A DNA stretch of 63,616 nt, the filler included, from Octopus bimaculoides (taxonomy: Eukaryota): NCBI RefSeq assembly GCF_001194135.2. It is 5 parts of 4 records of this genome, joined end to end, with 100 filler letters (N's around TTAATTAATTAA, not from the genome) between each part and the next. Parts side by side here need not be neighbours in the genome. Positions count along the whole stretch, not along the records: positions 51,809 to 59,857 come from NC_068993.1; 4 more parts are not named here. The stretch is one strand, 5' to 3'. A program made the position numbers and the translations under genes. Of this stretch, positions 14,508-59,857 are shown piece after piece. Each line of letters starts with the position of its first letter. Position 1 is the first letter of the stretch. The notes beneath the pieces are model-generated. The model was not told the origin of the DNA. It was given only the letters and a program-made list of their open reading frames with translations, and ran no database searches.

Positions 14508-14897
14508 GGCTGTATGGTAAGAAGCTTGCTTCCCAACCATGTGGTTCCAAGATCAGTCCCTCTGCGTGGCACCTTGGGCAAGTGTCTTCCACTATAGCCT
14601 CAGACTGACCAAAGCCTTGTGAGTAGATTTGGGAGATGGAAACTGAAAAGAAGCCCAATGCACACATGTGTGTCTACCTGTCTGTCTCTCTCTGTTTGAC
14701 CTTCATCACCGCTTGACAATCTGTATTGATGTATTTACATCCCTGTAACTTAGCAGTTTAGCAAAAGAGACTGATAGAATAAATACCAGGCTTTAAAGGA
14801 GAAAAAAATAAGTACTGGGTCGATTCCTCCAACTAAAATCCTTTAAGGTAGTGCCCCAGCATGGCCACGGTCTAATGACTGAAACAAAGAAAAGATT
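14508..14897 (+). mobile_element. SINE family B copy
   Basis: Same head, central and 3' modules as 2250-2623. Confidence 0.85.
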
Positions 14898-17800
14898 AAT
14901 GACACACACAATACAGTACACCTTGTGTATTTGACTTTAGAGTCCCACATAGAGCATTGTCATCCTGTCTGCTTCATGTGTAGTGGTTTTTGTTACTATT
15001 GCACTTCGTTGAAATAGAGATGGGGGAGACGTGCATGCACACACACACACACACACTAATTGCTAGCAAGGATGTAATATTTAATTCTTCAACCATAATA
15101 TACAGACAAGTATATTAAAGGTTTACAAACCAATTTTCTGACTAATTTTTGTGTTAGGTGTGTGTGTGTATGTATCTATGTATGTATGTATGTACAGACA
15201 TACATGCATGCATGCCATGACAGACAGATAGGATGTTCTTGAAGCTGAGGATTCAATGCAAATTCTACATTGACTCTGCCACCATCCATAATCTACCGCT
15301 TATGGCTTATATTTTATACTACCCTGAATACACAATAGGCACTAGTAGATAAGAAGTAACTGATGGTAAATAATATTCTGCTTTCGTTAAAAAAAATTTC
15401 AGTTTGAATGTTTTCAGAATGATGGAATTAAAGGTAGATAAAAATGTATTTGACAATCCAGGTTAGGTAGATATCCTGTTTGTTATCCAGTTAATTTTTC
15501 AGTGGTTTCATTTTCTAAAAAAATGATTGAATTTTTTTTCCCTTCTATATCTGATTATGCCCCCATCTTGTTTTTAATATCGAATCCTTTTACTTTCAAC
15601 AATTCCTGACAACCATTTAATATCTTAGACACAGTCTCTTTCGCTCTGTCCTTCCCTCTCTGATTCTTTCCTCTCTTCACACAAGTACATAGACCAGGCA
15701 TTAGTTATATTCTAGTTTACACACCAGTAGAACAACTTTTGCTTTTTTTTAGCATTTGTTTGATAATGGTAATAATGTTCCTGACTAGAATGCTACTCCA
15801 ACTAGTGATGTCTACTTTATCAGTAATCACGAACTATAACAGACAGATTGGTGAATATCAACAAACCTAATTGCTATGGTTTCCCCAATTTTTTAACAAC
15901 CCAGTTTTCGTAGGCAAAATTAAAGCTGTATTTAATGTCTTTCCTACAAAAAAGTATATCTTGGACGCTAATGTACAAGCAAATGCTTGATCATAGACAA
16001 ACCACATCAGTCTATGAAAGCACCCTCGTGCACACACACACACATAGAGACACACTCATACACAGAGGAAACCTTTTTAGATAGCTATGTTACATCATCA
16101 TTATATTCTATTTTTGGCTTTGCAATTGTGTATATATGAATGGGAGATTGATTATCTGGACATTGGCTATTTCTTACAATTATAACTTGTTATTAATTAT
16201 TACTACTTCATTAAACAACTAGTTTTTGGTTTGCAGTAGTATATCAGCTGGTGTCGACATACTTTATTAAAATATTTAATACATATGCACATGTGCATAT
16301 GTGCATTCAAATGTGTCTAAATGTGCATGGATTTATAAGCTTTGTTAGAGGTGGGAAACTCTTTTCATGTTAATGTATTTGTTTTGAGTGTAGTGTCTCG
16401 ATATGAAAATGCCTTTAAAATATCATTTTGATTTCATTGTACCATGGTTTCATTAATTATTTTAGGTGCCTGTATAGTCACATGCACACACACATAGGCA
16501 CCCTCTTGGCCTGCCCACCATTTGATCCAGCAGAGTATTGAGGATGTGACACCTGGAGGGAGAAAAGGGCTACATCAGAATTAGGTTGATATGTACTTAA
16601 ATTTAGCCCCATGCTGAAGGACATGATGTACTATCCAGTCTAGGATTTGAACATACAAGATTTATGGTTGTGGGCTCAACCAATCGGCCACATACCTTCA
16701 ATACACTCACACACCATCTTTCACAGTCCTTCAGTTGTGCGTACACAGAATGGTAAAGGTTGTAGGTTTGTTTTGCCTGTTTATTTTTTTTTGTTATTGT
16801 TGTTATTCAGCAGCTGGGGTACTGTAGGATGGAGATGACAGACTAAAACAACAAAACCACATCTATTAAAATGTATTATGTCTTCTCACTTGCTCGCTTC
16901 AACCACACAGAAAATCCTTTTAAAGTTTTGAATTACACAGTCTGTAGTTGTAAGGCCAACAAAGTAACACATCCGATTTTGTTTTACACCAAAATTATTA
17001 ACAATAAGTAGTGCATTTAGCACTTCCTGTTGTTAATAAAAACAGAAAAAATCTGCTTTGATATACTACATGTGTGGATGTATAACACTTAAAAATATAA
17101 TGAGGTAACATTGACGTTGAGTTAGTTATTGAATGCGAGTGGGAAGTCCTCTAGTTGTGTATTCAACATTTTGTCTTACTAATATTCTAAATGCATGCCA
17201 TGTGGTATATAGTTAGATATGTATCTCTATAAAAGTTAAAATTATTTCGTATATGTAATTTGTATCCAAAATTAGTTCTGAAAAGAAAGCTTAATTAAAT
17301 TGTTCTTCTGAAAGTAGGATGTTACCTAACAAACTCTATGGTGGTGTAAGTATGCTTATAATAGTTTTTGTTTTCGATGCAGTGTTTAACAGCCTGTGCC
17401 CTTCCTGTGTGTGAATGCATATAAAAGAATTTTTCTAATTCTACAATTCTATGTTCATAGCATGGACTAGTGTGTTAGGCTACTAGGCTCACCATTATAA
17501 AGCCATGAGTTCAGTTCCTGAACTTGATGGTCCACTATGTCTTATATATATGTGTGTGTGTGTAAAACAGCATTTCTTGGATGCATTTGGAATTGGTATT
17601 TTGCAGCTATATTCATCATCATCGTTTAACATCCGCTTTCCATGCTAGCATGGGTTGGACGATTTGACTGAGGACTGGTTATCCAGATAGCTACACCAGG
17701 CTCCAATCTGATTTGGCAGAGTTTCTACAGCTATCTTGTTGCTATTTAACAAACATTATATCCTTTACCTTGACAATATGTGGCCGGGGGGCAGGAGGAG

Positions 17801-23200: not shown

Positions 23201-25234
23201 TAGAGAGGAATAATTTTCATTTGAAACTATCTTCACAGATAGATATACTAAGTTTTGCATTACCACCAAATGATAGTGGCAGTATAACACTCCAGGTAGT
23301 GATTTGTGAAGTTGTTCCTTAGAGTAAAAGTTATATATGAATTAAATGAATGAAATCATATTTAATGCTTTGAGTATTAAATTGTTGAAGTAAGCTCAAG
23401 TATGCTGTGAAAGAAAGATATTAATGTGAATTAATACTCATATTTTTTTTTTTTATTGATAACTCTGGGGTTTCTCAACAGAAGTGTAACCTCAGTGAAA
23501 TTCATCAAACACCTATTGGTGTTTCTCAGTAGACATGTTTCTCAGTAGACATTTTATTTGGTTTCAGTCATTCTTGTATCTATCCCTCACATGAATATGT
23601 AAATAAAATTTACAAACAACTTCTATGATTAAGCAAAGTACAAAAGGCAAATATAGACAGGCACTTCATAAAAAGGAATATCTATGGAAGAGGAAAGCAT
23701 TCATTTTTACTTTAGTGACCAAATAATTATTGCTGGGGGTGGTTGTACTGAAAGCATAATAGTTAAAGGTAAGAAAGAAGTAAAAGAAGTCCATAGGGCT
23801 ATCTTATTAAAACTATTGATAACAAGGTTTCTTCAAAAACCAAAAAGAAGCTACTTTGTGGTCATCTGGTCTGTAAAAAGTAGACAAATATCCCACCATC
23901 TTAAAAAAAGAGGATTTGTTTGGTTACAGAATCTTAAAAAGCTGGAATGATCATGATGGAAATCCTAAGCAACAGCAAAAACAGAGTACCTCAATGTAGC
24001 ATGTGTATGAAGTTTGATGTTGTATGGTTGTGATACATAGGCTCTGATTATAGAAGAAGTGATGTAGTTAGAGAAAGATAATTCAGTTACGATTCAATAT
24101 GTAATATTAACTTCCATGAAAGTGAAGCACAAGCAAGCTGAGAGAGTGTCTGATCATTAAAGGTATGAGATGATGTATACAAGAGAGACAACTACTCTCA
24201 TATGGATATGTGAGGTGAAATGCATAGTTTACAAATAATAAAGAATGCCAGAGACAAAAGAAAACAGGTTTCAAGATGGTGTGACTCACAGGAGTTGCAC
24301 AAGAAGCAATTTGTCATAGTGTAAAACTTGTTCAGATTGTGCCAGCATAAAGAAAAAAAAACAGACGTTAAATTAATGAAGTGTTAAAGTGGTGATGAAT
24401 TAATGATATAATCAGGAAAGCATTATTGCTAGAAATAGCAGCCAAATTTCCTTCAAATCATAACTTCTGTTTTCTTCGTGAGGTTCAGCTCCCTAAGACT
24501 TAATTCTTCCTATATCTTCTTTTTTTCAAAAGTCCTTTCCTCTAAAATAACTTGGCTAATTTTATCCAGCTACATCTTTCATATACATCACATGTCTGTA
24601 CAAGTGGAGATTTCCCACTTGCATGCTACAGCTGATTCCTCTTATACCCAGTTTATCTCTCAGCCCATTTGCTCTTTACTAATCATGCACACTATCTTGA
24701 ATTCTGCAATCCAGCATGAAATGGTATTCTATCCTATGCTCAATGAAAATTATATCACTCTCATCAAGGAATTTTAACATGAAGAAACCTATTCAGGAAA
24801 TAAAGCATCTTATGTATGTGTTGGAAAGCACTTTTCTTTAAGAAAGGATCACATGAAGAATTTGCTAAATGAAATTCAAATTCAAGACAAGAAAATGCTC
24901 ACTGTAAATCAAAGCACTAAAAGCTTTTAAAATCTGGCCTAAAGCTTTCAAGACACCTTAATTAATGGCTTGAAGCATTCTATAACTCTAGAAAACTGTG
25001 TCTCTTCAGAGAAAATATTAAACATTTCTATTGTTGAGATAGATTTGTATAAACAGTTCTGCCTTTCATCTTACTATTACAAAAATTATAAGAAAGCTAA
25101 TCCTAAAATTTATGACCTTATTAGCCAACTCTATTTTATGTTTCTTGTATATTGTATGTAATATGTATGGAAGAGATATATATCTAGCACATGAAAGTAT
25201 ATCTTCTTCAATATATATATAAAACATGCATATA

Positions 25235-25895: not shown

Positions 25896-27636
25896 TCTTA
25901 ATATATAAATCTGAAGTTGTGTGTTTGTGTGAAGCCTTTTTGAATGTTTATAGAAATCCACATTTTCCACTTTTTCGTAAAAATTTTTACATCAATGGAA
26001 TTTTCTCGATCTGAACTTTCCAGTGCAGTAATTAGATTTTTAAAATTCCGTTTACTTTGTGTGATTTAAGGGAGATTTGGCTGTTGTTTCTAGCAACTTT
26101 CATATTTCATCCCTTCCACCTGGAACGCCATTCTTACACACGCGCTCAACATAAAAATATAGAGAGTAAGAGTTAAAGAGGGAGAGGGAGAGAGAGAGAA
26201 AGTGATACATACAACGTCATAGATTAAACTTTCATCTCAGTGTTCTTTACCTATTTTTCACAACATAGATACGTAAAAACACACACAACCACACATACTT
26301 GACCTGTGACAACAACATACACATTGCTCTCAATCTCTATTCATTTCTCCCCCTCTTCCTCTCTCGCTCTCTGTGCAAGTAAACACAATCGTTCACATCG
26401 TGGTATATTTACAAAACATTGNNNNNNNNNNNNNNNNNNNNNNNNNNNNNNNNNNNNNNNNNNNNNNNNNNNNNNNNNNNNNNNNNNNNNNNNNNNNNNN
26501 NNNNNNNNNNNNNNNNNNNNNNNNNNNNNNNNNNNNNNNNNNNNNNNNNNNNNNNNNNNNNNNNNNNNNNNNNNNNNNNNNNNNNNNNNNNNNNNNNNNN
26601 NNNNNNNNNNNNNNNNNNNNNNNNNNNNNNNNNNNNNNNNNNNNNNNNNNNNNNNNNNNNNNNNNNNNNNNNNNNNNNNNNNNNNNNNNNNNNNNNNNNN
26701 NNNNNNNNNNNNNNNNNNNNNNNNNNNNNNNNNNNNNNNNNNNNNNNNNNNNNNNNNNNNNNNNNNNNNNNNNNNNNNNNNNNNNNNNNNNNNNNNNNNN
26801 NNNNNNNNNNNNNNNNNNNNNNNNNNNNNNNNNNNNNNNNNNNNNNNNNNNNNNNNNNNNNNNNNNNNNNNNNNNNNNNNNNNNNNNNNNNNNNNNNNNN
26901 NNNNNNNNNNNNNNNNNNNNNNNNNNNNNNNNNNNNNNNNNNNNNNNNNNNNNNNNNNNNNNNNNNNNNNNNNNNNNNNNNNNNNNNNNNNNNNNNNNNN
27001 NNNNNNNNNNNNNNNNNNNNNNNNNNNNNNNNNNNNNNNNNNNNNNNNNNNNNNNNNNNNNNNNGTGAAAAGTACCGACCCTGCCATCTATTATAACTTT
27101 TGTTGTTCTGTTTAATATATACACAGATTATGCCTCCAAAGAAGAGAGTTTGCTGGGGAAAGACAGCAACTGGTTTAAAATGACAGCCACAGACTGCAGC
27201 AATTCACCACATTCCAGTAGCTACTTTGAACATAATGCAAAATGGTGCATCAACACCTTCTGCCCAATCTGATAGAATTCTGGCAAAACTGTTTAGCAAC
27301 AGATCGCCAGCAATTGCTTCATCACAAATTGCCATCTAGCTCCTGTGAAAAGGGATTACCCTGCTATGTATAATCAGGGCAGCGCAAAAAGTTGTTTTGC
27401 ACAAGCATTTCTATAGGCAATTAGACGAATGAAATTTACGTATGCTTAATAATTTTACGCAAAACAGCTTTCAGACTTTCCCTATTAATTTCATCGTCTT
27501 TTGAATTATGAACATATTTACATCATAAGGGCTTTTTCGTTGTAAGGCTTTCTTTTTTAGTTGATTTTCAACTAGCAAGACTTATCGTAGATGGCATAAT
27601 AAGTCACACCCGGACAAGGTCGGGTTATACTGCTAG
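25896..27636 (+). mobile_element. Non-autonomous Helitron (spans a 643-bp N gap)
   Basis: 5' end A|TCTTAATATATAAATCTGAAGTTGTGTGTTTG. 3' end has the hairpin acccggacaaggtcgggt, a short spacer and CTAG|T. Insertion between A and T with no TSD. Confidence 0.65.
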
Positions 27637-44882: not shown

Positions 44883-45619
44883 GCGAATTCGCGCATATAC
44901 ATACATACACGCACTCGCACACATATACACACGCCGCCCACTTTCTTACAAATACAAACTCCAGTACGCTCAAACATTAAAGGAAATGCAAGCCAAGTGC
45001 TATTTTCACTTTCGTTTTAGCAGCTGCGTTTAGTTTTTATTCCATCTGTTTCTAACTGTCCTTTGTTTCTTGATTAATATCAGTGAATTCTCTTTACTTT
45101 GGGAGCGGGGGCATTAAATTTCTACACTCATATACAGTATGTATGTCTTGTCCATATATCTACTCAACCGATGATAAAGTCTGTATATCTTGCGTTATTT
45201 ACAGCAGTTACGTCCCTTTACAGTCTGTGTTCGAATCTCACCGAGATCAACTTTATCTTGTATCCTTCCAGGGTCAATAGAATAAAAAGATTGCCTGAAA
45301 AATTGTCACCCAAGACTTTGGCAGAGAGACATCTTGTCAGGTGGGATATCCTAGGGTGATGAATCTTCAGGTAACAACGCATAGCGTCATTTGTTATTTA
45401 TTTATTTATTTATTTGCAGGTGAGGCCAGGATTAAATCAGAACTTTGAGTCATCGTAATCATTACCACGACTAGCGACAACAGTGACCACAACACCAAAA
45501 TCACCACCATCGTTAAAACCTCTATCATTATCGCTACTACTACGACCACCAAAACCTGTACACCTACCACATCAACAACTACCAACACCATTACAACTGA
45601 TAATATTCTTTTCTACTCT

Positions 45620-46247: not shown

Positions 46248-47923
46248 TCAGTCCTCAGCCCCCTCCTATTTATTATAGTTCTCCAGGCAATAACACAGGA
46301 ATTCAAGACAGGATGCCCCTGGGAGCTCTTCTATGCTGATGACCTTGCTCTAATTGCTGAGTCACTATCAGAACTAGAGAAGTTTCAGGTTTGGAAGCAA
46401 GGATTAGAATCGAAGGGCCTTAGAGTCAGCCTAGCTAAAACCAAAGTCCTAATCAGTAGGAATGTGGACAAACCACAAACCCCTTCGGGTAGATGGCCCT
46501 GCTCGATTTGTAGAAAAGGCGTAGGTAGAAACTCCATAAGATGTACCCAGTGTAAGCTATGGACACATAAGAGGTGCAGCAATATCAAAGGAAGGCTAAC
46601 TAGCAAGATAGTTTTTGTATGTGGCAGATGCTCAGGAGCCATAAACACTGAAAATGTACAGAGAACAACTTCTGCCATATTCCAGGGAGAAAAACTAGAC
46701 TTAGTTGAAAGCTTCCATTACCTAGGCGACCAAGTCAGTAAGGGGGAAGGGTGCACTGAAAGTGTAGCTGCTAGAATAAGAATAGCCTGGACAAAGTTCA
46801 GAGAGCTCTTACCTCTGCTGGTGACAAAGGGCCTCTCATTCAGAGTAAAAAGCAAACTGTATGACACATGTATACGAACAGCCATGACTACTGAGGACAT
46901 GCGTAAGCTCACAAGGAATGAAGCCAGTATGCTCCGATAGATGTGTAATGTCAGTGTGCATACTCGACAGAGTGTAAGTACCTTGAGAGAAAAGTTAGAC
47001 CTAAGAAGCATCAGTGATGGTGTGTGCAAGAGAGACAATTGTGCTGGTATGGTCATGTGGTGAGAATGGATAAAGATATCTGTGTGAAAAAGTGCAACAC
47101 CCTGGCGGTTGAGGGAACCTGTGGAAGAGGTAGACCCAGGAAGACCTGGGATGAGGTGGTGAAGAACAACCCTCAAACATTAGGTCTCACCAAGGCAATG
47201 ACTAGTGACTGAGATCTTTGGAAATATGCTGTGCGTAAGAAGACTCGGCAAACCAAGTGAGACCATAACCCATGGCTTTTGCCAGGGGTGTAGCCAGCCC
47301 ACTTATGCGTACCTTTCCTTCATTGGACACTAAACTCTTCTTGCAAAGACCTGTTGAGGCAAGTTAAATCAAAATCGAAACTGAACCAAATTCGATAACT
47401 AGCACCCATGCCAACCTTTCCTTCATTGGACACTAAACTCGAAATTGAACCAAATTCGATGACTAGCACCCATGCCAGTGGAGTGCTGACAGCACCGTCC
47501 GAGCGTGATCATTGCCAGAACAGCTGTCTGGCTTCCGTACCAGTGGAACGTAAATAGCACCATTTGAGTGTGATCGTTAGCAGCATCGCTTTACTGGCAC
47601 TTGTGCTGGTGGTATGTGAAAAAAGATTCGAGCGAGGTCGTTGCCAGTGCCACTGGATGACCCCTGTGCAGGTGGCATGTAAAAAAACACCATTTGAGCG
47701 TGGCCGTTGCCAGTTCCGCCTGACTGGCCCTTGTGCTGGTGACATGTAGAAGCACCCACTACACTCTCGGAGTAGTTGACGTAAGGAAGGGCATCCAGCT
47801 GTAGAAACTCTGCCAGATCAGGCTGGAGCCTGGTGCAGCCATCTGGTTTGCCAGTCCTCAGTCAAATCGTCCAACCCATGCTAGCATGGAAAGCGGATGT
47901 TAAATGATGATGATGATGATGAT
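46248..47923 (+). mobile_element. 5'-truncated RTE-clade LINE: RT C-terminal half plus complete 3' UTR and (GAT)n tail
   Basis: SVLSPLLFIIVLQA...ELFYADDLAL (YADD motif)...FHYLGD...RIRIAWTKFRELLPLL...RQLCWYGHVVRM...GRGRPRKTWDEVV. A tandem-repeat 3' UTR follows, ending gcatggaaagcggatgttaaa(tga)n. Confidence 0.9.
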
Positions 47924-51807: not shown

Positions 51808-51830
51808 NATATACATATCTCTCTCTCTCA

Positions 51831-51866
<36 letters not shown>

Positions 51867-52251
51867 GCTATATATACATATTTATATGCATATATATATA
51901 TATATATTTATATGCACATATATATGCTTACATTTGCATATATACATATGCATATCTATGCTTATATATATATACGCATATATATATACATATATATATA
52001 TGTTATATATAGACATGTATACATATATATATGTATATATATGGATGTATATTTATGTATGTTTATATATGAATATATATGTAAATACAATATGTATGTA
52101 TATATATGTATATGTTTTGTGTATGCATATATACGTCAATATATATATGTATGTATATATATATATGTGTGTGTGTATATATTTATTTGTATATATATAT
52201 GTATATATATATATAAATATATATATATATATGTATATATATATATTTATG

Positions 52252-52308
<57 letters not shown>

Positions 52309-52330
52309 TTGTATATATAAGTATGTATAT
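51808..52330. repeat. (TA)n/(TG)n degenerate microsatellite field; similar fields at 37840-38170, 38830-39000, 39410-39960 and 41260-41600
   Basis: Direct reading; source of the YIYI-type spurious ORFs. Confidence 0.95.
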
Positions 52331-53368
52331 ATGCTGTCGCTGTGAACATTTCCCTAAGTAATGTACTGTCAGTAAAGTGACTGGTGTCTGGAAGTGAATA
52401 GAGCTTTTCACAATCCTGTGTCTTGTCAGCACCTGTCAAATTTACTCGCATGGAAAACAAAGGTTATATGTTGATGGCGTTGCTGGTGCTGTTCCTGCTG
52501 ACGTTACCGATTAAGGCATATTAAAAGTCTCACAATGAACCTAGGCACTACAGGTTTCGTCTTTTATTCATGACAGTGAGCTACTTCATCACTGAGTACG
52601 CAACAGACACTTTGTCACGCACGACCAGTTGAGAACGCTTGTAACTTTGATATAAATCAATGATTAACGGACAAACGAACAGAGCCACCATATTCTCTAG
52701 CAACATAAAATAACTGTCATAGAATATTAGGACAAAATATTTCTAGAGACTTCTCCTGCGGGAATATTAGCAGGCCCGCTTAAATACCAGCCAGTAAATG
52801 TTCAATTGATAGATACGCTTACACGAAATGTAAGCGAGACATTTCATGTAAGCTAGATATTTAATAACTATTAGACACATTGTCACAAATAGTCGTCGGG
52901 GCTATAATTTCATGTCTGTTTCAATTATAGAAGCTAGAAGCTAGTCACATCAAATATGAAGCTTTTAGGAAAATACGAAATTTAATTTTTACTGAATGTT
53001 ACCTCGCGTGACATGAAGATGCTTTTGTAACTAATTACTCCGTCAGTCGTTTGTTACTCAATATGTAACACTTGTTGTGTCTTGACGTATATATATACAT
53101 ACGTATATACATACATACATACATATGTGTGTGCGTGTGCTGTGTGTAACTCATCGGGGGTAAAGGCGTTTGTTGGGATTTAGGTGATAAATGCTTGAGT
53201 TGTTTTGTTTTCACGTTCGTTAGTTGGTGTGTGAACCTATCTATTGATATATCTTTCCAATGAACAGATCGTGAACGAATGAATCTATTCAAGATACATT
53301 CTGGGTTTGCTGATTAACAATGGAAGGCAAATGCTGAGTGGTTGTTTTGAGAGTGAGTGTGTGAGAGA

Positions 53369-53399
<31 letters not shown>

Positions 53400-54148
53400 T
53401 GAGAGAGAGAGAGAGCGAGAGAGAAAGAGAGAGAGAGAGAGAGAAACTTATACTTCATCTTATAATGTGACTATAGTTGTTATATATGTTAAATGTTCTC
53501 CAGAAACATATTGAATTCCGTTTCTGTTTATTGATTAAATTACTAGAGCAGAAAACTATATCCGATAAAAATAGCACATAAATTAAAGCGAAATATGATA
53601 TTAAACAAAAAACCAGGATAAAATATATGTTGTAAAACAGAAAGGGAAAGTAATATATTTTATAATGATAAGAGACTTCTGTACACAGAATGCTTTGTCA
53701 AACTATCACTACTGCAAAATTACTACACGATCTGCATGAAAACAAATTACTAATAGGACTTGATGTGTTCTGAAGCTTTTCTATAATTGTTGTTGCTTAC
53801 TTCCCCGATCAATCCTGATCCAGGTGATGCATTGATCAAAAACTTTGTAGTATTTTTACAAGAAGCAATGTCACCTAAGACTTTATTATTCAATGTGTTT
53901 TTTTTCTTTGACTCAGATGATACTGAGTGATTTAAATGCAGATTGGCTGCTATATCTAGCCGAAAGAGCAACCATAAAAATTCTTCTGCTAGCTTGTACT
54001 ACAACATGTGATCATTCGCTATAATTTGCATGTGCTCTCAATTCTTCACCCTCGCATCGATTCTATTCTCAGTTCTTGTATTATACACTGATTATGTATT
54101 GTTTATATTTTGTACTGCTTTCAACTGAAATTTCTTTTTGTTAACCAG

Positions 54149-54326
54149 GCTACATGCAGTGTAGGAAATGACTCTTCTTTGTTTATCTGCGAATGTATAG
54201 AAGGCTACACTGGTAGAATTTGTGAAACTTCTATAGACAACTGCCAGCGAAACAACTGCACTAACGGTGCAACATGCATTGACCTACAAAACAGTTATGA
54301 CTGTCAATGTGCTCCTGGTTTTACTG
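54149..54326 (+). CDS. Internal exon of an EGF-repeat protein (Notch/fibropellin-type EGF, about 1.5 repeats)
   Basis: Polypyrimidine acceptor tttctttttgttaaccag|GCT. Translates ATCSVGNDSSLFICECIEGYTGRICETSIDNCQRNNCTNGATCIDLQNSYDCQCAPGFT-G, with canonical EGF Cys spacing. Donor G|gtaagt, phase 1. Confidence 0.93.
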
Positions 54327-55114
54327 GTAAGTAAAATTCTTTCATAAATGGTTTAATTAATTAATTAATTAATTTATTATTAATATTATTACCAAAAGTA
54401 AGGCTATCATCATCAGAACGTAATAAAATATATATAGAAGTTAGCCTTTACATAAAACGCATTCATATATTCTCATGTAATCCACATTCTTAAACTAAAT
54501 CACATAATCTGAAACGCATCTCTTCAAAAGACTCTATGGTAATGATATATATATATACATCNNNNNNNNNNNNNNNNNNNNNNNNNNNNNNNNNNNNNNN
54601 NNNNNNNNNNNNNNNNNNNNNNNNNNNNNNTATATATATATATATATATATTTTTATCTGCTAGTAAACTGTATAGTTAATATCGGATCTCATACATATG
54701 GAACCTAATAAACTCGAAGTTTAGTATACTTTCAAAAGACGAGCAAAGATTTACATAACCCAGATATTTTAAATTAGTGTGCTTAGTACAGTCTTGAAGA
54801 TAGCCAAAACAAAAAAAAACATATCAAAAGCAAAACAATGAGAAATACAAACTCTGATGTATAGAGTTTAAATATGGATGTTCAGGATCAATTGTTACAT
54901 ACATGATTTTTTTGAAATTGTATTCTCTTCAAAGCTTATGCTTTAGCATAAGTTATGGTGAGTACACACAAAGAGACGTTATAGCAAACTAATTTAATAA
55001 AGAAAAATGCAATAGATTCAAATTTTGTAACTAATTTAATAAAGAAAACTGCGATAAATTCAAAATTTGTGTCATCGTTTCAAATTTTGACCTCAGACCA
55101 GTAACTTCGAACGA

Positions 55115-55285
55115 GGGGTAAATCGATTACATCGACCCCACTACTCAACAAGTACTTATCTTATCGACCCCGAAAGTATGAAAGACAAAGTCGACTTCGG
55201 CGGAATTTAGAATCAGGATATAAAGACGGACGAAATACTGCTAAGCAATTAGTCCGGCGTGTTAACGGTTCTGCCAGCTCGCCGA
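55115..55285 (-). mobile_element. SINE family C copy in the last intron of the EGF gene
   Basis: Reverse complement of the 7323 element head and core. Confidence 0.8.
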
Positions 55286-55393
55286 CTTCTGGTAGGGTAA
55301 AATGCTGAAGATTATGTGTTTATAATAACCTTTTCTGATTGTATAAACTTAAATAAAATATATTCTCAAATATGTAGTATTAATTAATTCTAG

Positions 55394-57444
55394 GTTTGAG
55401 ATGTGAAGTCGATGTTAATGAATGCAGCAGCGACCCGTGTTTACATGGTGGCATTTGTTACGACAGAGTGAATAGCTTTAGATGTGATTGCCCAAAGGAA
55501 ACCAGTGGAGAAATGTGTGAAGATAATTATCTCTTAACATCAACTAGCGTTACTACTGAACATGACAATAACTATCAATATACAGTCAAAACTAATTCCT
55601 CTGACGTAATATCTACAGAAAAGCAATCTGTAGATATATTTATCCCAACAAGTACAAATACCAGCATTTTAAAAATATACACCACAGAAAACACCCAGTT
55701 AGACGTAACGCAAGAATTAAATGAAAGTGGGACAATTAAATATGGATTAACCACCAATTCTTCTGATTTTTTTCTTGATAAAAGTAACGCCACCTTAACT
55801 ACAGTATCGGCAGAATCTCATACGATTAAATATAACTCGAAGGATATCACTTCAGTGACAGAAGACATACTTTTGACAACTATCGATGCTTCAAATCCAC
55901 AAACTGTTGAACAGATTCATGTGCCTGTCACCGTAGTCACAGAGAAACCCAAATTGGTTACTGATTGTTTGGTTATCAAAATATTCCGATCCAATATACT
56001 AGGCCAGATATTCTCAGAAATTCCAAAATACACTGTTTGTTGGTGGGCATATGATTTCATCTTGCCACCCATGTCTAAAGTTGGTACCACATATATTGAA
56101 AACCAGAACGAAGCGTATATTTGGGTTGAAGACACTATGAACGATTTATTACCTTTACCTTCTAAATCGATTTCACTAAACAGAGAAGATATATTGTCGT
56201 ATTTAAAAGATAATTTACAAATAATTGATAACAGCTCTCAAAATAAACTTCCACACAATTTAGTTGATTCATCATGTATTCAAATTTGGATGAAATCAAA
56301 ACGGAGAGGATTCTGGTATTTGAAAACAGAAACAGGAGATGCAAATGTTGAATATAAAAGCAAATTGAATGTTAAACGAAGATTCCTATCATCTAAGATG
56401 TTTTACTGCAAACAAAACTATACCTTGGCTGTTACAACAGACAGAAAAAGCTTGCGGAATGAAACTACACAAGCATCAATATTATCACAATCAACGTCTA
56501 TGGAGAACGAAACTACAAACATATCGACATTATCACAGTCAACATTGTTGACGAACAATACCAAATACATAACCACATTATCTCAATCAACGTTACTGAA
56601 GAACCACTCCACACGCTTGCCAACATTATCAGAACCAACTTCATTGAAAACGAAAACCATGCGTATATTAACATTATCACAACCGACGTTACAGATAAAC
56701 AAAACAATTAATATGCCAACAATATCAGAACTAATTTCGCTGAATAGCAAGAGCACACAAGTATCAAAACTGTCACAAACAACCTCAGGGATCAACAAAA
56801 CAATATACATGACAACACATGCTGTTTCCATCTCACCAAAAGAAATGACGACTGTCGGAGTAAGACGGTTTCACTTACTTCTGAGGAAACTTAACAAGAC
56901 TCATTACCAGGAGCGCTTTTCATCAATCATAAACAGAGATGGCAACAAACCAAAAATGGTGTTGACAGTTCTTCGGACAGCCAAGAGAATCTACCAGATT
57001 GGATCTGACTCAGCTCGTAAAGTTTACAGAAAAACAAAACTTCTTCTGCATATGACATTAAAGCAACTCTCTACAATTTGGATTTCGGTAAAAACTTTTG
57101 CAGTTCAACCGATCTCTAGAACTCAGGAAACTATAAGACGGACATGGACTGATTCCTGGTTAAAGGTTAATAAGGCATTCACTAAAACTCGCCAATTATT
57201 ACATGATGCTTATATGTTGGCACGGAATAACTTCAAAAATATTTATCAACGAATGAAGGAAAACACTTCAAATCTGTCAAGAGACAGCTATCAGAGATAT
57301 TACAATTATTACAACAGCTATAGCAGAAAACTTAACAAAGTATCGGGTTATTTTTCGCATATGTATAAAAATTATACAAAGAATTTGCAGAAATATTGGG
57401 AGAAGAATATTAAATATGACAACGTTAATAACAAACGCCGTTGA
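55394..57444 (+). CDS. Terminal coding exon of the same gene: Ca-binding EGF, S/T-rich stalk, unknown Cys/Trp domain, 16-aa repeats, basic amphipathic tail
   Basis: Acceptor ttaattctag|GT is phase 1 and completes Gly from the previous exon (G|GT TTG AGA TGT GAA). Contains the [40 protein letters not shown]. The 682-codon frame is uninterrupted in AT-rich DNA and ends TGA at 57442-57444. The track's initial M is really Leu (TTG). Confidence 0.9.
56458..56817 (+). repeat. Coding tandem repeat, 48 bp/16 aa, about 8 units
   Basis: Units start at aa 355, 371, 387, 403, 419, 435, 451 and 467 ([48 protein letters not shown]...). The DNA core acattatc recurs at 48-bp spacing. Confidence 0.85.
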
Positions 57445-57513
57445 TAACAATGTTTCTCTCTCACCGTCCTTTTAAAATTCTTTCCTGGTCTCTGTCTGTC
57501 TGTCTGTGTATAT

Positions 57514-57553
<40 letters not shown>

Positions 57554-58079
57554 GTGTGTGTGCATGCGNNNNNNNNNNNNNNNNNNNNNNNNNNNNNNTG
57601 TGTGTGTGTGTGTGTGTGTATAAAACAAGAAGACAAAAAATTAAATGCTCTAAGAATCCTGTTTTGAATAAAAAGAGAATATGTACATCTTCATGATAAT
57701 ATGCTATCGGTTTCAATTGTCAAAGAAAATCTAGTCGTGAAATAAGAAAAAAAGGAAAATAATTTGAAGTAAATTAAATTAATCTGTGATGAATGCAATT
57801 TTCAAAGTCCATTTGTTTATGTTAGAAAAAGTACATGGCTATAGTTGTTTGATTCCCACCGGTGGTTGCTTTGTCAATATATTAATAGTAACAGTTTTAG
57901 CAGTGACAGTAACATATTGTTACCCTTTGTAGCAGAACTGGTCAATGTTCCTTATTGGCAATGCTGATATTAAAGAGTGGTTCGTAATGCTATGGTGGTC
58001 ATTTCAGAAGTAGCAGCAATAACGGAACCGATGGTAGTAGGTTGTGGCGGTAAGTGCTTCAATAATAAAAGTATTAGTA

Positions 58080-58166
<87 letters not shown>

Positions 58167-59444
58167 GGAAAGAAGAAGTGTATTCTAAATCAGGAAAGAA
58201 AGCAGGGGAAATTGTTTTGGGGTTTGAAAATGCTCCTGTATCTCAAAACCTTTAGTGTTGTTCAAATGTTATAATAGATGTATATTATGAATTTCCGCGA
58301 ACACATGACCTTATATTACTGTCTATCTCCGTGAAACTCATAGGAATTTCTATGAATATTTGATCGTGGAAACATTTTTCTCCGAATTTTCCCTTGTAAC
58401 GTTAAACTCTCTTCAACCCTTTTCTTATTTATTTACCTTTCTTAATTTTTACCATCGATAAACAAAAGAATTGTCGAAACCGGTTTGATATTTGAATAAA
58501 TTGTATTACAAAACTTAAAACGACTACACATTTTGATATTCAAGTGCATTTTCAAACGACAAAAGGAAATTCTCATTTATGGTAATTATTCTACCGCTTG
58601 CTTTTGCCGAACCGTTAAGTTACGGGGATTCAAAGACACTGACACCGTTTGTCAAGCAGTGGTAATGGGTAAACACAACAGAAAGATACACACACGCATA
58701 CACAGACATATATATATATATAAGGTTAAGAAGGGTATTGGATTCAACCAAACTCAAAGATACAGGTAATACTGAGTAAGTGCTGTATAACGGCTAGTTT
58801 TGCCTCATACAACGAATGGGGCAAAACTAACTAACTAACTATATATATATATANNNNNNNNNNNNNNNNNNNNNNNNNNNNNNNNNNNNNNNNNNNNNNN
58901 NNNNNNNNNNNNNNNNNNNNNNNNNNNNNNNNNNNNNNNNNNNNNNNNNNNNNNNNNNNNNNNNNNNNNNNNNNNNNNNNNNNNNNNNNNNNNNNNNNNN
59001 NNNNNNNNNNNNNNNNNNNNNNNNNNNNNNNNNNNNNNNNNNNNNNNNNNNNNNNNNNNNNNNNNNNNNNNNNNNNNNNNNNNNNNNNNNNNNNNNNNNN
59101 NNNNNNNNNNNNNNNNNNNNNNNNNNNNNNNNNNNNNNNNNNNNNNNNNNNNNNNNNNNNNNNNNNNNNNNNNNNNNNNNNNNNNNNNNNNNNNNNNNNN
59201 NNNNNNNNNNNNNNNNNNNNNNNNNNNNNNNNNNNNNNNNNNNNNNNNNNNNNNNNNNNNNNNNNNNNNNNNNNNNNNNNNNNNNNNNNNNNNNNNNNNN
59301 NNNNNNNNNNNNNNNNNNNNNNNNNNNNNNNNNNNNNNNNNNNNNNNNNNNNNNNNNNNNNNNNNNNNNNNNNNNNNNNNNNNNNNNNNNNNNNNNNNNN
59401 NNNNNNNNNNNNNNNNNNNNNNNNNNNNNNNNNNNNNNNNNNNN

Positions 59445-59477
<33 letters not shown>

Positions 59478-59481
<4 letters not shown>

Positions 59482-59800
59482 CTTTATATTGCCCACAGAG
59501 GGCTAAACATAGAGGGTACAAACATGGACAGGCAAAGTGATTACGTCGACCCCAGTGAGTAACTGGTAATTATTTTATCGACCTCGAAAGGATGAAAGGC
59601 AAAGTCGACCTCGGTGGAGTTTGCACTCAGAACTTAAGGACGGGTGAAATACCGCTAAGTATTTCATACGACAGGCCTCTTTCAGTTTATAAACTTCATT
59701 CACAAGCCCGAGAAAACACTTGCTCAATGTGCCACGCAATGAGACTGAAGCCGAAACCATATGGTTGAGAAAGAAGCTTCTTACCACCCAGTCACGCCTG
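59478..59800 (-). mobile_element. SINE family C (59478-59670) followed by a family B head remnant
   Basis: Reverse-complement matches to both families. Confidence 0.7.
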
Positions 59801-59816
59801 CATCAATACACACGCG

Positions 59817-59857
<41 letters not shown>

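Follow-up and report, generated by a model that had tools for sequence, protein, structure and literature searches.

A divergent Delta/Serrate/LAG-2 family protein of Octopus bimaculoides with a stalk and two candidate new extracellular domains in place of a membrane anchor

Introduction

The stretch of DNA analysed here (the window; 63,616 nucleotides, filler included) is joined from parts of the Octopus bimaculoides genome (NCBI RefSeq assembly GCF_001194135.2), and the piece that we examined, positions 51809-59857 from NC_068993.1, contains on the plus strand two coding exons spanning 54149-57444. These exons raise the question of what kind of protein starts as a row of Notch-type EGF repeats and then continues, within one giant exon, through several unfamiliar segments. 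A sequence-only reading of the locus had taken them for EGF modules to which a new terminal exon with no recognisable homologue was added, giving a lineage-specific secreted glycoprotein. We find that they are the last two coding exons, at the 3′ end, of LOC106880385, a gene whose upstream exons encode the head of a Notch ligand. LOC106880385 is a divergent member of the family named for Delta, Serrate and LAG-2 (DSL), and its product is most likely a secreted glycoprotein of matrix or mucus.

The two exons belong to a DSL-family gene

LOC106880385 has two annotated isoforms, namely: X1 (XP_014785782.1, here P0026, 1056 aa) and X2 (XP_052828326.1, here P0001, 1015 aa), and the C-terminal 639 residues encoded in the piece are 100% identical to the latter; their match to X1 is likewise 100%. 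The piece encodes only aa 313-374 and 374-1056 of isoform X1. The upstream exons, which lie beyond the piece, encode a hydrophobic signal peptide (Kyte-Doolittle mean of 2.16 for the N-terminus of isoform X1), a C2/MNNL domain, a DSL domain and the first EGF repeats. The order in the whole protein is signal peptide, C2/MNNL, DSL, EGF repeats, acidic stalk, a Cys/Trp ('CW') domain, 16-residue repeats and a basic, Tyr-rich helical domain.

Pfam places a DSL domain (PF01414) at aa 179-225 of isoform X1, and its score of 40.8 bits clears the cut-off of 24.2. When the N-terminal 300 residues are compared with known structures, the first match is the human Dll1 ectodomain (4xbm), in an alignment that starts at residue 26 and has an E-value of 1.5e-57, followed by Jagged-1/2, Dll4, fly Delta and fly Serrate; the Argonauta orthologue matches the same Dll1 ectodomain at 8.4e-62. 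The C2/MNNL assignment rests on residues 26-178, which align with the N-terminal part of structures of Dll1 (4xbm), Jagged-1 and the Drosophila proteins Delta and Serrate; for the Argonauta orthologue, PF07657 is recorded. Ordinary hEGF repeats come after the DSL domain; there are five in isoform X1, about 2.5 of them coded in the window, and four in isoform X2. Because C2/MNNL and DSL domains are coded upstream, this is a DSL-family protein and not a bare EGF protein, and the idea of EGF modules extended by a new exon is incomplete. Isoform X2 omits 41 residues (WSGESCQNNIDDC...AGITG) that correspond to the first EGF repeat after the DSL domain, and alternative splicing may thus vary the spacing between the DSL domain and the EGF array.

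A survey of the Notch pathway in Lophotrochozoa published in 2021 (PMC8166818) contains Obi_XP_014785782.1 in its supplementary set of 138 DSL genes. That survey gives XP_014769856.1 and XP_014771450.1 as the Delta proteins of O. bimaculoides and XP_014779348.1 as its Jagged; LOC106880385 is not among the genes assigned to either, and its C-terminus is undescribed there. A literature search with the gene, protein and sequencing-run accessions found no mention of them. What is already known is an annotation as 'uncharacterized protein', the listing of the DSL domain in the survey, and the existence as such of DSL proteins without a transmembrane (TM) segment. We found no earlier description of the architecture, of either C-terminal domain and how these are distributed, or of the relationship to the paralogues described below. 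Some scallop DSL domains, e.g. that of Mye_XP_021376117.1 (YCDKDYYGAACDTYCIPQNNTKGHYTCDKTDGKRVC...), are closer to the DSL domain of the LOC106880385 family (CIP.N..KGHY.CDK..G.K.C) than canonical Delta is, and this resemblance suggests that the DSL subtype may have originated before the cephalopods.

The features of the locus are as follows (all on the plus strand).

54149-54326: penultimate coding exon (exon A), aa 313-374 of isoform X1, with a phase-0 acceptor and a phase-1 donor (G/GTAAGT)
54327-55393: GT...AG intron, holding an assembly gap (54562-54630) in a (TA)n run and a copy of a dispersed repeat resembling a short interspersed nuclear element (SINE; 55119-55288)
55394-55524: start of the terminal exon (exon B), with the end of EGF4 (..LRC) and the complete EGF5 (EVDVNEC...GEMC), Pfam EGF/hEGF
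55525-55944: acidic Ser/Thr-rich stalk, about 140 aa, pI 4.4, 32% Ser+Thr, five N-X-S/T sequons
55945-56439: four-Cys/Trp (CW) domain, about 165 aa, 4 Cys and 5 Trp, with Cys codons starting at 55966, 56038, 56275 and 56407
56470-56805: seven degenerate 16-residue repeats, in register, five of them with an N-X-T/S sequon
56860-57441: basic Tyr/Lys/Arg-rich helical tail, about 194 aa, pI 10.5, 43 Lys+Arg, 16 Tyr, 26 aromatic residues
57442-57444: stop codon TGA
57667-57672: AATAAA, a candidate polyadenylation signal by pattern only, 223 nt past the stop

Exon A, which codes for the second half of EGF3 and most of EGF4, follows the acceptor ttgttaaccag/G; read through its donor into the intron, the frame meets a stop after two codons. 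It is 98-100% identical to isoform X1 by tblastn and 95.5% identical in nucleotides to the orthologous exon of O. vulgaris. Exon B opens at 55394 behind the acceptor aattctag/G and ends at 57444. Joined in phase 1, the two exons keep 742 codons open until the TGA, and the chance of a 683-codon open frame at the 33% GC of this AT-rich, microsatellite-dense piece is about 3e-24. The junction (CAPGFTG/LRCEV) is the same in the NCBI models XP_014785782.1 and XP_052828326.1; for O. bimaculoides the splice is based on these models and on conservation. Splice sites, frame and modelled junction therefore agree with the two in-phase exons and roughly 2.5 EGF repeats that had been read from the sequence.

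The gap at 54562-54630 is intronic and has (TA)n on both flanks. At the orthologous O. vulgaris locus (L001) its flanks abut, with 52128-54560 corresponding to L001 33394-35848 and 54631-58580 to L001 35834-39720. Since the gap is intronic and the O. vulgaris flanks meet, it hides no exon and the frame does not depend on it; an exon or frame break concealed there is ruled out by the (TA)n position and by collinearity with no extra sequence. The piece holds no further exon of LOC106880385, as tblastn of isoform X1 yields only aa 312-374 and 374-1056. Beyond the stop, a second small gap (57569-57598) interrupts a (TG)n run of the 3′ untranslated region, and an ATTAAA motif lies at 57640.

The C-terminal modules match no known domain family

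In the translated fragment, Pfam recognises EGF and hEGF domains only in aa 1-104 (half of EGF3, EGF4 and EGF5) and none in the remaining 640 residues. The segments that follow the EGF repeats are real, as had been proposed: composition, Tandem Repeats Finder (TRF) and AlphaFold2 each bear on them. The stalk is weakly conserved, with 26% identity to Argonauta. The pattern C...CW...W...P...C...C of the CW domain is common to the orthologues and to the mucin-like paralogues in the alignment, and an AlphaFold2 model from nine sequences (predicted local distance difference test (pLDDT) of 75, predicted template modelling (pTM) score of 0.73) gives an alpha/beta fold with a long beta-hairpin, two helices and two further strands. 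In the decapodiform-like protein P0006 the third and fourth Cys are replaced together, by Ser and Tyr, while the related genomic sequence P0005 keeps both. Because the two are lost together, this suggests that Cys3 and Cys4 may form a disulfide, and a dispensable one.

The 16-residue repeats are detected by TRF as a period of 48 nt at 56481-56595, and the array is shorter or absent in the Argonauta and decapodiform orthologues. The tail and C2/MNNL are the best-conserved regions of the protein. The tail is modelled entirely as helix, in long helices (pLDDT 55), with a hydrophobic periodicity of 3.7 residues and several amphipathic stretches whose hydrophobic moment (muH) reaches 0.73 over 18 residues, and it carries N-glycosylation sequons. 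The product as a whole has 20 such sequons, compared to 13 ± 3 in shuffled sequences.

Neither domain could be placed in a known family. Pfam gave nothing above cut-off for the C-terminal segments of the fragment or for any member of the CW and tail alignments, and a profile search of the PDB gave no significant match (best E-values of 0.017 for the tail and 0.15 for CW). Foldseek against the PDB returned at best an E-value of 0.34 for CW, with TM-scores of 0.32 or less, and 3.4 for the tail, whose low-confidence model makes the fold search uninformative. The sequence-only reading had expected no full-length match to a well-characterised family, and for the C-terminus there is indeed none in Pfam or the PDB. 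The CW domain and the basic tail are thus two candidate new extracellular domain families.

Homologues extend across coleoids and, for the tail, to gastropods

Homologues of the C-terminus do exist, contrary to what had been supposed, and all of them are uncharacterised. A word-indexed search with the C-terminus recovered octopod orthologues only, namely: O. vulgaris (84% identity), a third octopod (70%) and Argonauta hians (46%). With the tail alignment, the same type of search recovered only two gastropod fragments, and with the decapodiform C-terminus it gave no matches, missing even the query's own cluster. The informative search was an exhaustive profile search with the CW-to-end alignment against 1.84 billion representatives; it returned nine clusters in all, which fall into three groups.

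Besides the octopods, the orthologues include P0006, a decapodiform-like protein of 1126 aa with the full architecture (signal peptide, C2, DSL, at least eight EGF repeats by Pfam, stalk, CW and tail), and P0005, which groups with it. P0006 is coded by an unbroken open reading frame (ORF) of 3381 nt on a 4.9-kb contig (L003) from the assembly of sequencing run SRR9970008. Since the octopod gene is multi-exon over tens of kilobases, a spliced mRNA is the simplest explanation for this contig. The last EGF repeat and the full C-terminus form a single exon in O. vulgaris, the third octopod and Argonauta (aa 376-990), genomic contigs of the third octopod have the same acceptor of the terminal exon, and a decapodiform-like genomic contig has one 2280-nt ORF with four EGF repeats, stalk, CW and tail. 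The architecture is conserved across coleoids: octopuses, argonauts and squid- or cuttlefish-like species.

The paralogues are XP_014785705.1 of O. bimaculoides (P0008) and GAB1601705.1 of Argonauta, both named 'mucin-5AC-like', and CAE1258370.1 of Acanthosepion pharaonis. In these proteins a DSL domain and one or two EGF repeats precede a Ser/Thr-rich region some 1000 residues long, after which come a CW-like domain and the tail; the available models show no evident C2/MNNL. 'Mucin-5AC-like' is an automatic label, and the Pfam domains VWD, C8, TIL and cystine knot are all absent from P0026, P0008 and P0010. Orthologue and paralogue are about 145 kb apart on one contig of Argonauta, a layout that fits local duplication:

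Argonauta hians BAAFZT010000020.1, about 32.41-32.46 Mb (L002) and about 32.61-32.63 Mb (L007), on opposite strands: orthologue and paralogue

Outside the cephalopods, XP_070199909.1 of Littorina saxatilis ('mucin-2-like') combines EGF and Ser/Thr-rich repeats with a tail-like segment (profile search E-value of 1.3e-4). When cephalopod tails were aligned with Littorina-type tails using hhalign, the probability was 97.9% and the E-value 3.8e-13 over 120 columns.

Some of the gene models call for care. The O. vulgaris model P0002 (at locus L001 of OX597826.1), named 'neurogenic locus notch homolog 2', starts within the first EGF repeat after the DSL domain (MIDIIQYDNMSAKILEGWSGESC...) and appears to be cut at its 5′ end, and its name is a mis-transfer based on the EGF repeats. 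The same model is without four tail residues, WTDS, that are present in the other three species of a four-species alignment. Residues 1-90 of P0008 (MMSLLQQYTGIFAYTKKEAITTLWKIDRQ...DIVVVDKKK...) resemble neither a signal peptide nor a C2 domain and may be a mis-joined, repeat-derived exon.

The terminal exon is under selective constraint

Ratios of non-synonymous to synonymous substitution rates (dN/dS) were determined pairwise by the Nei-Gojobori method for the terminal exon, per domain.

O. bimaculoides vs. O. vulgaris (dS 0.09): whole 0.75, EGF5 0, stalk 2.5, CW 1.21, repeats 0.49, tail 0.44
O. bimaculoides vs. third octopod: whole 0.47, EGF5 0.42, stalk 0.61, CW 0.43, repeats 0.59, tail 0.38
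O. bimaculoides vs. Argonauta: whole 0.35, EGF5 not computable, stalk 0.68, CW 0.31, repeats 0.48, tail 0.22

The EGF5 value against O. vulgaris reflects a dN of 0. Against the same species the exon has two indels, of 6 and 12 nt, both in frame, compared to 4-9 per segment in the flanking non-coding DNA. The terminal exon is coding, with CW and tail constrained, and it is fast-evolving for a developmental ligand; selective constraint also acts on the C2 and EGF parts.

In the O. vulgaris pair, the stalk shows 2.5 synonymous and 20.5 non-synonymous differences, and CW shows 9.2 and 43.8. CW differs from O. vulgaris at 24% of its residues, which is as many replacements as separate it from a much more distant octopod, where dN/dS is 0.43. 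The pattern in stalk and CW may indicate a recent acceleration or relaxation, on small counts. It should be noted that we make no claim of positive selection on either segment: the close-pair ratios of 1.2 and 2.5 come from those small counts and the deeper pairs give 0.3-0.75.

The protein departs from canonical Notch ligands

Canonical Notch ligands are membrane proteins, and they activate the receptor through Mind bomb- or Neuralized-dependent endocytosis of the ligand, which pulls the receptor open. No TM segment is found in the fragment, whose highest 19-residue Kyte-Doolittle mean is 1.17, compared to 2.88 for the TM segment of the canonical O. bimaculoides Delta used as positive control; here the sequence-only reading was right. 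Nor is there one in the full-length octopus, Argonauta and decapodiform-like proteins, where only the signal peptide exceeds 1.6; for LOC106880385, no 19-residue window beyond the signal peptide passes 1.2. The C-terminus is hydrophilic, with no hydrophobic end of the kind that precedes a glycosylphosphatidylinositol (GPI) anchor, and the protein contains neither a cytoplasmic tail nor motifs for ubiquitin-dependent endocytosis. Because it has no membrane anchor, we infer that it cannot serve as a canonical ligand that is pulled by endocytosis. It is not a Notch receptor either, in that Pfam shows only EGF-type and DSL domains and none of the receptor hallmarks (LNR, heterodimerisation domain, TM segment, RAM, ankyrin repeats).

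The head itself also differs. The DOS motif in EGF1-2 (consensus from PMC2504490) is absent from P0026, P0001, P0002, P0004, P0006, P0024, P0008 and P0009, while the positive controls, octopus Delta and human Dll1, both match. In the DSL alignment, cRPRDDaFGHf of Dll1 corresponds to cIERDDDDDGHy of O. bimaculoides LOC106880385, so that R-P-R is replaced by I-E-R. Directly ahead of the invariant G-H, Dll1, Jagged-1 and the octopus Delta and Jagged proteins have Phe, and in the present family this residue is Asp in Octopus, Gly in Argonauta, Glu in the decapodiform-like protein and Lys in the paralogue. For residues of the DSL face other than Jagged-1 Phe207, the numbering is presumably that of Cordle et al. 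2008. Replacement of this Phe in Jagged-1 (F207A) abolishes both Notch binding and activation (PMC3888931).

Compared to canonical Delta (Dll1, 4xbm; octopus Delta, XP_014769856.1), LOC106880385 thus shares the arrangement of signal peptide, C2/MNNL and DSL domains followed by tandem EGF repeats, but is without DOS-type EGF1-2, the DSL Phe, the TM segment and the cytoplasmic tail, and has about 640 extra residues.

Weighing the possible roles of the protein

With its signal peptide, the lack of a TM or GPI-like end, four conserved Cys and 20 sequons, the protein is predicted to be secreted, and it is probably heavily N- and O-glycosylated. We consider a matrix- or mucus-associated glycoprotein to be the most likely product, with a likelihood slightly better than even. 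Attachment to an anionic matrix or cell surface, or assembly into oligomers, would be the task of the CW domain and the basic helical tail, and the stalk would present the C2-DSL-EGF head to a partner that might be Notch, a lipid or something else. This role is favoured because a giant mucin-like paralogue ends in the same C-terminal module and a mucin-like protein of a gastropod in part of it, because the Notch-contact residue varies within the family, and because molluscs use Notch-ligand-like EGF proteins as secreted materials. The sequon enrichment and the pairing of an acidic stalk with a basic tail also count for it. The lineage-specific secreted glycoprotein proposed earlier stands as regards predicted secretion, restriction to a lineage and a long C-terminus outside the Pfam and PDB families, but the C-terminal module is unique neither to this gene nor to octopus.

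Known secreted systems offer partial parallels. The mussel protein Pvfp-5beta of Perna viridis (7qab) and the scallop protein Sbp9 are Notch-ligand-like EGF repeats secreted as extracellular material (PMC6709630, PMC9314366, PMC13348336), and 7qab matches the EGF region with an E-value of 7.6e-10. Their likeness is, however, confined to the EGF repeats, since they are without C2, DSL, CW and tail; the analogy is one of structural role and not of membership. Littorina saxatilis XP_070199909.1 shares a tail core of about 120 residues and EGF repeats split by Ser/Thr-rich linkers, but it is without DSL and CW and continues after the tail into a long low-complexity region rich in Gly, Asn, Tyr and Pro. 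Gel-forming mucins share Ser/Thr-rich regions but differ in having VWD-C8-TIL, a C-terminal cystine knot and tandem repeats rich in Pro, Thr and Ser. Mollusc Delta2 and the expanded lophotrochozoan DSL genes (PMC8166818) are similar in being lineage-specific DSL duplicates with altered C-termini.

Several observations weigh against a matrix or mucus role. The stalk is Pro-poor (3 Pro in 139 residues), unlike the proline-, threonine- and serine-rich regions of classical mucins. The pLDDT of 55 for the tail means that neither oligomerisation nor matrix binding is backed by structure. The dN/dS of 1 or more for stalk and CW against O. vulgaris is less in keeping with a purely structural role than with selection that is relaxed or diversifying. 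Between Octopus and Argonauta, C2/MNNL (69% identity) equals the tail (68%) in conservation, and it is 53% identical to the decapodiform-like sequence; such conservation of the head points to a conserved binding function, and the bound partner could still be Notch. Finally, secreted, DOS-less DSL proteins are real ligands in C. elegans, according to work cited in PMC2504490.

These last points lead to the reading that comes second in our estimate, a minority possibility with roughly half the weight of the first: a diffusible or matrix-presented Notch modulator whose head would still bind Notch and which might act as an antagonist or cis-independent competitor, or else as an agonist that works with a separate DOS-type co-ligand, a mode proposed for the DSL-only ligands of C. 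elegans. The head aligns over its entire length with the Dll1 ectodomain, and few parts of the protein are as well conserved. According to PMC2504490, DSL-only secreted ligands without DOS are documented for C. elegans and DLL3 is a DOS-less vertebrate case, and in work cited by PMC8166818 Delta and Serrate that were engineered to be secreted antagonise Notch in Drosophila. By analogy, the C. elegans secreted ligands and DLL3 would be the closest functional parallel if the head of LOC106880385 still binds Notch. The likeness to the DSL-1/LAG-2 type and to DLL3 lies in a DSL domain without DOS, some members being soluble and without TM segment (PMC2504490); they differ in not being orthologous, in being short and in having no mucin-like stalk, CW or helical tail, and DLL3 is membrane-bound. 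Against Notch binding, the position equivalent to Jagged-1 Phe207 holds Asp, Gly, Glu or Lys, the R-P-R positions are not retained, a paralogue has become a giant mucin-like protein, and both the dN/dS values and the heavy glycosylation resemble those of secreted surface and matrix proteins.

A membrane-tethered juxtacrine ligand, held by the amphipathic basic tail helices or by a partner protein, is improbable. The strongly basic tail has the periodicity and hydrophobic moment that such tethering might use, and the C2 domains of Notch ligands bind phospholipid (PMC3888931), but no segment comes near TM hydrophobicity, the cytoplasmic motifs for the ubiquitin-dependent endocytosis required in canonical activation are missing, the tail carries N-glycosylation sequons, and the same domain ends giant mucin-like proteins. 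Far less credible still is an annotation or read-through artefact, in which the 2-kb ORF past EGF5 would be fortuitous or transposon-derived. Its 640 residues do have no Pfam or PDB match, and in nucleotide identity to O. vulgaris the exon (92.4%) does not surpass one of the intron segments beside it (92.3%). However, the length of the ORF is beyond chance expectation as calculated above, the fusion of EGF and C-terminus in one exon recurs in four other genomes and on the transcript-like contig, only in-frame indels occur, dN/dS falls to 0.35-0.47 at greater depth with the four Cys conserved, and similarity to transposon proteins is absent from all searches. A transposon-derived or chance ORF is ruled out by conservation, in-frame indels and dN/dS.

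Returning to the favoured matrix or mucus glycoprotein, LOC106880385 is a coleoid DSL-family protein that has kept a constrained C2-DSL-EGF head, its membrane anchor being replaced by a glycosylated stalk and two conserved domains. It bears on the diversification of DSL genes in molluscs and on Notch action by soluble or matrix-bound DSL proteins outside nematodes, and its CW and tail add two candidate extracellular domain families, the latter extending to gastropods. A bolder proposal, which we regard as a long shot, is that CW and tail define mollusc-restricted 'DSL-mucins', in which a Notch-binding head would, in coleoids, be anchored in the matrix and not on the membrane of a signalling cell. 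If true, resistance to pull, or a stored or graded ligand, could be provided without ligand endocytosis, a different way of presenting a Notch ligand. If the protein is only a component of mucus or egg coat, it would represent ordinary domain shuffling in a fast-evolving secreted protein.

Repeats and microsatellites around the gene

The SINE-like repeat in the intron (55119-55288) has a second copy downstream of the gene (59477-59665), about 78% alike, and the O. vulgaris locus L001 carries more copies, on either strand (14715-15101 and 46586-46819). A tRNA origin of the dispersed repeats was considered and rejected, since ARAGORN shows no tRNA-like gene in the piece. A second dispersed family is represented at 58582-58722 and has at least six copies of 74-79% identity on both strands of L001, for example at 25954-26096, 45428-45570 and 23848-23992.

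Long (TA)n, (GA)n, (TG)n and (CA)n microsatellites occupy 51809-52330, 53350-53445, 57500-57620, 58090-58165 and 58840-59470. The piece contains three assembly gaps (54562-54630, 57569-57598 and 58855-59444), and because all of them lie within or adjoin such runs, they look like microsatellite assembly breaks.

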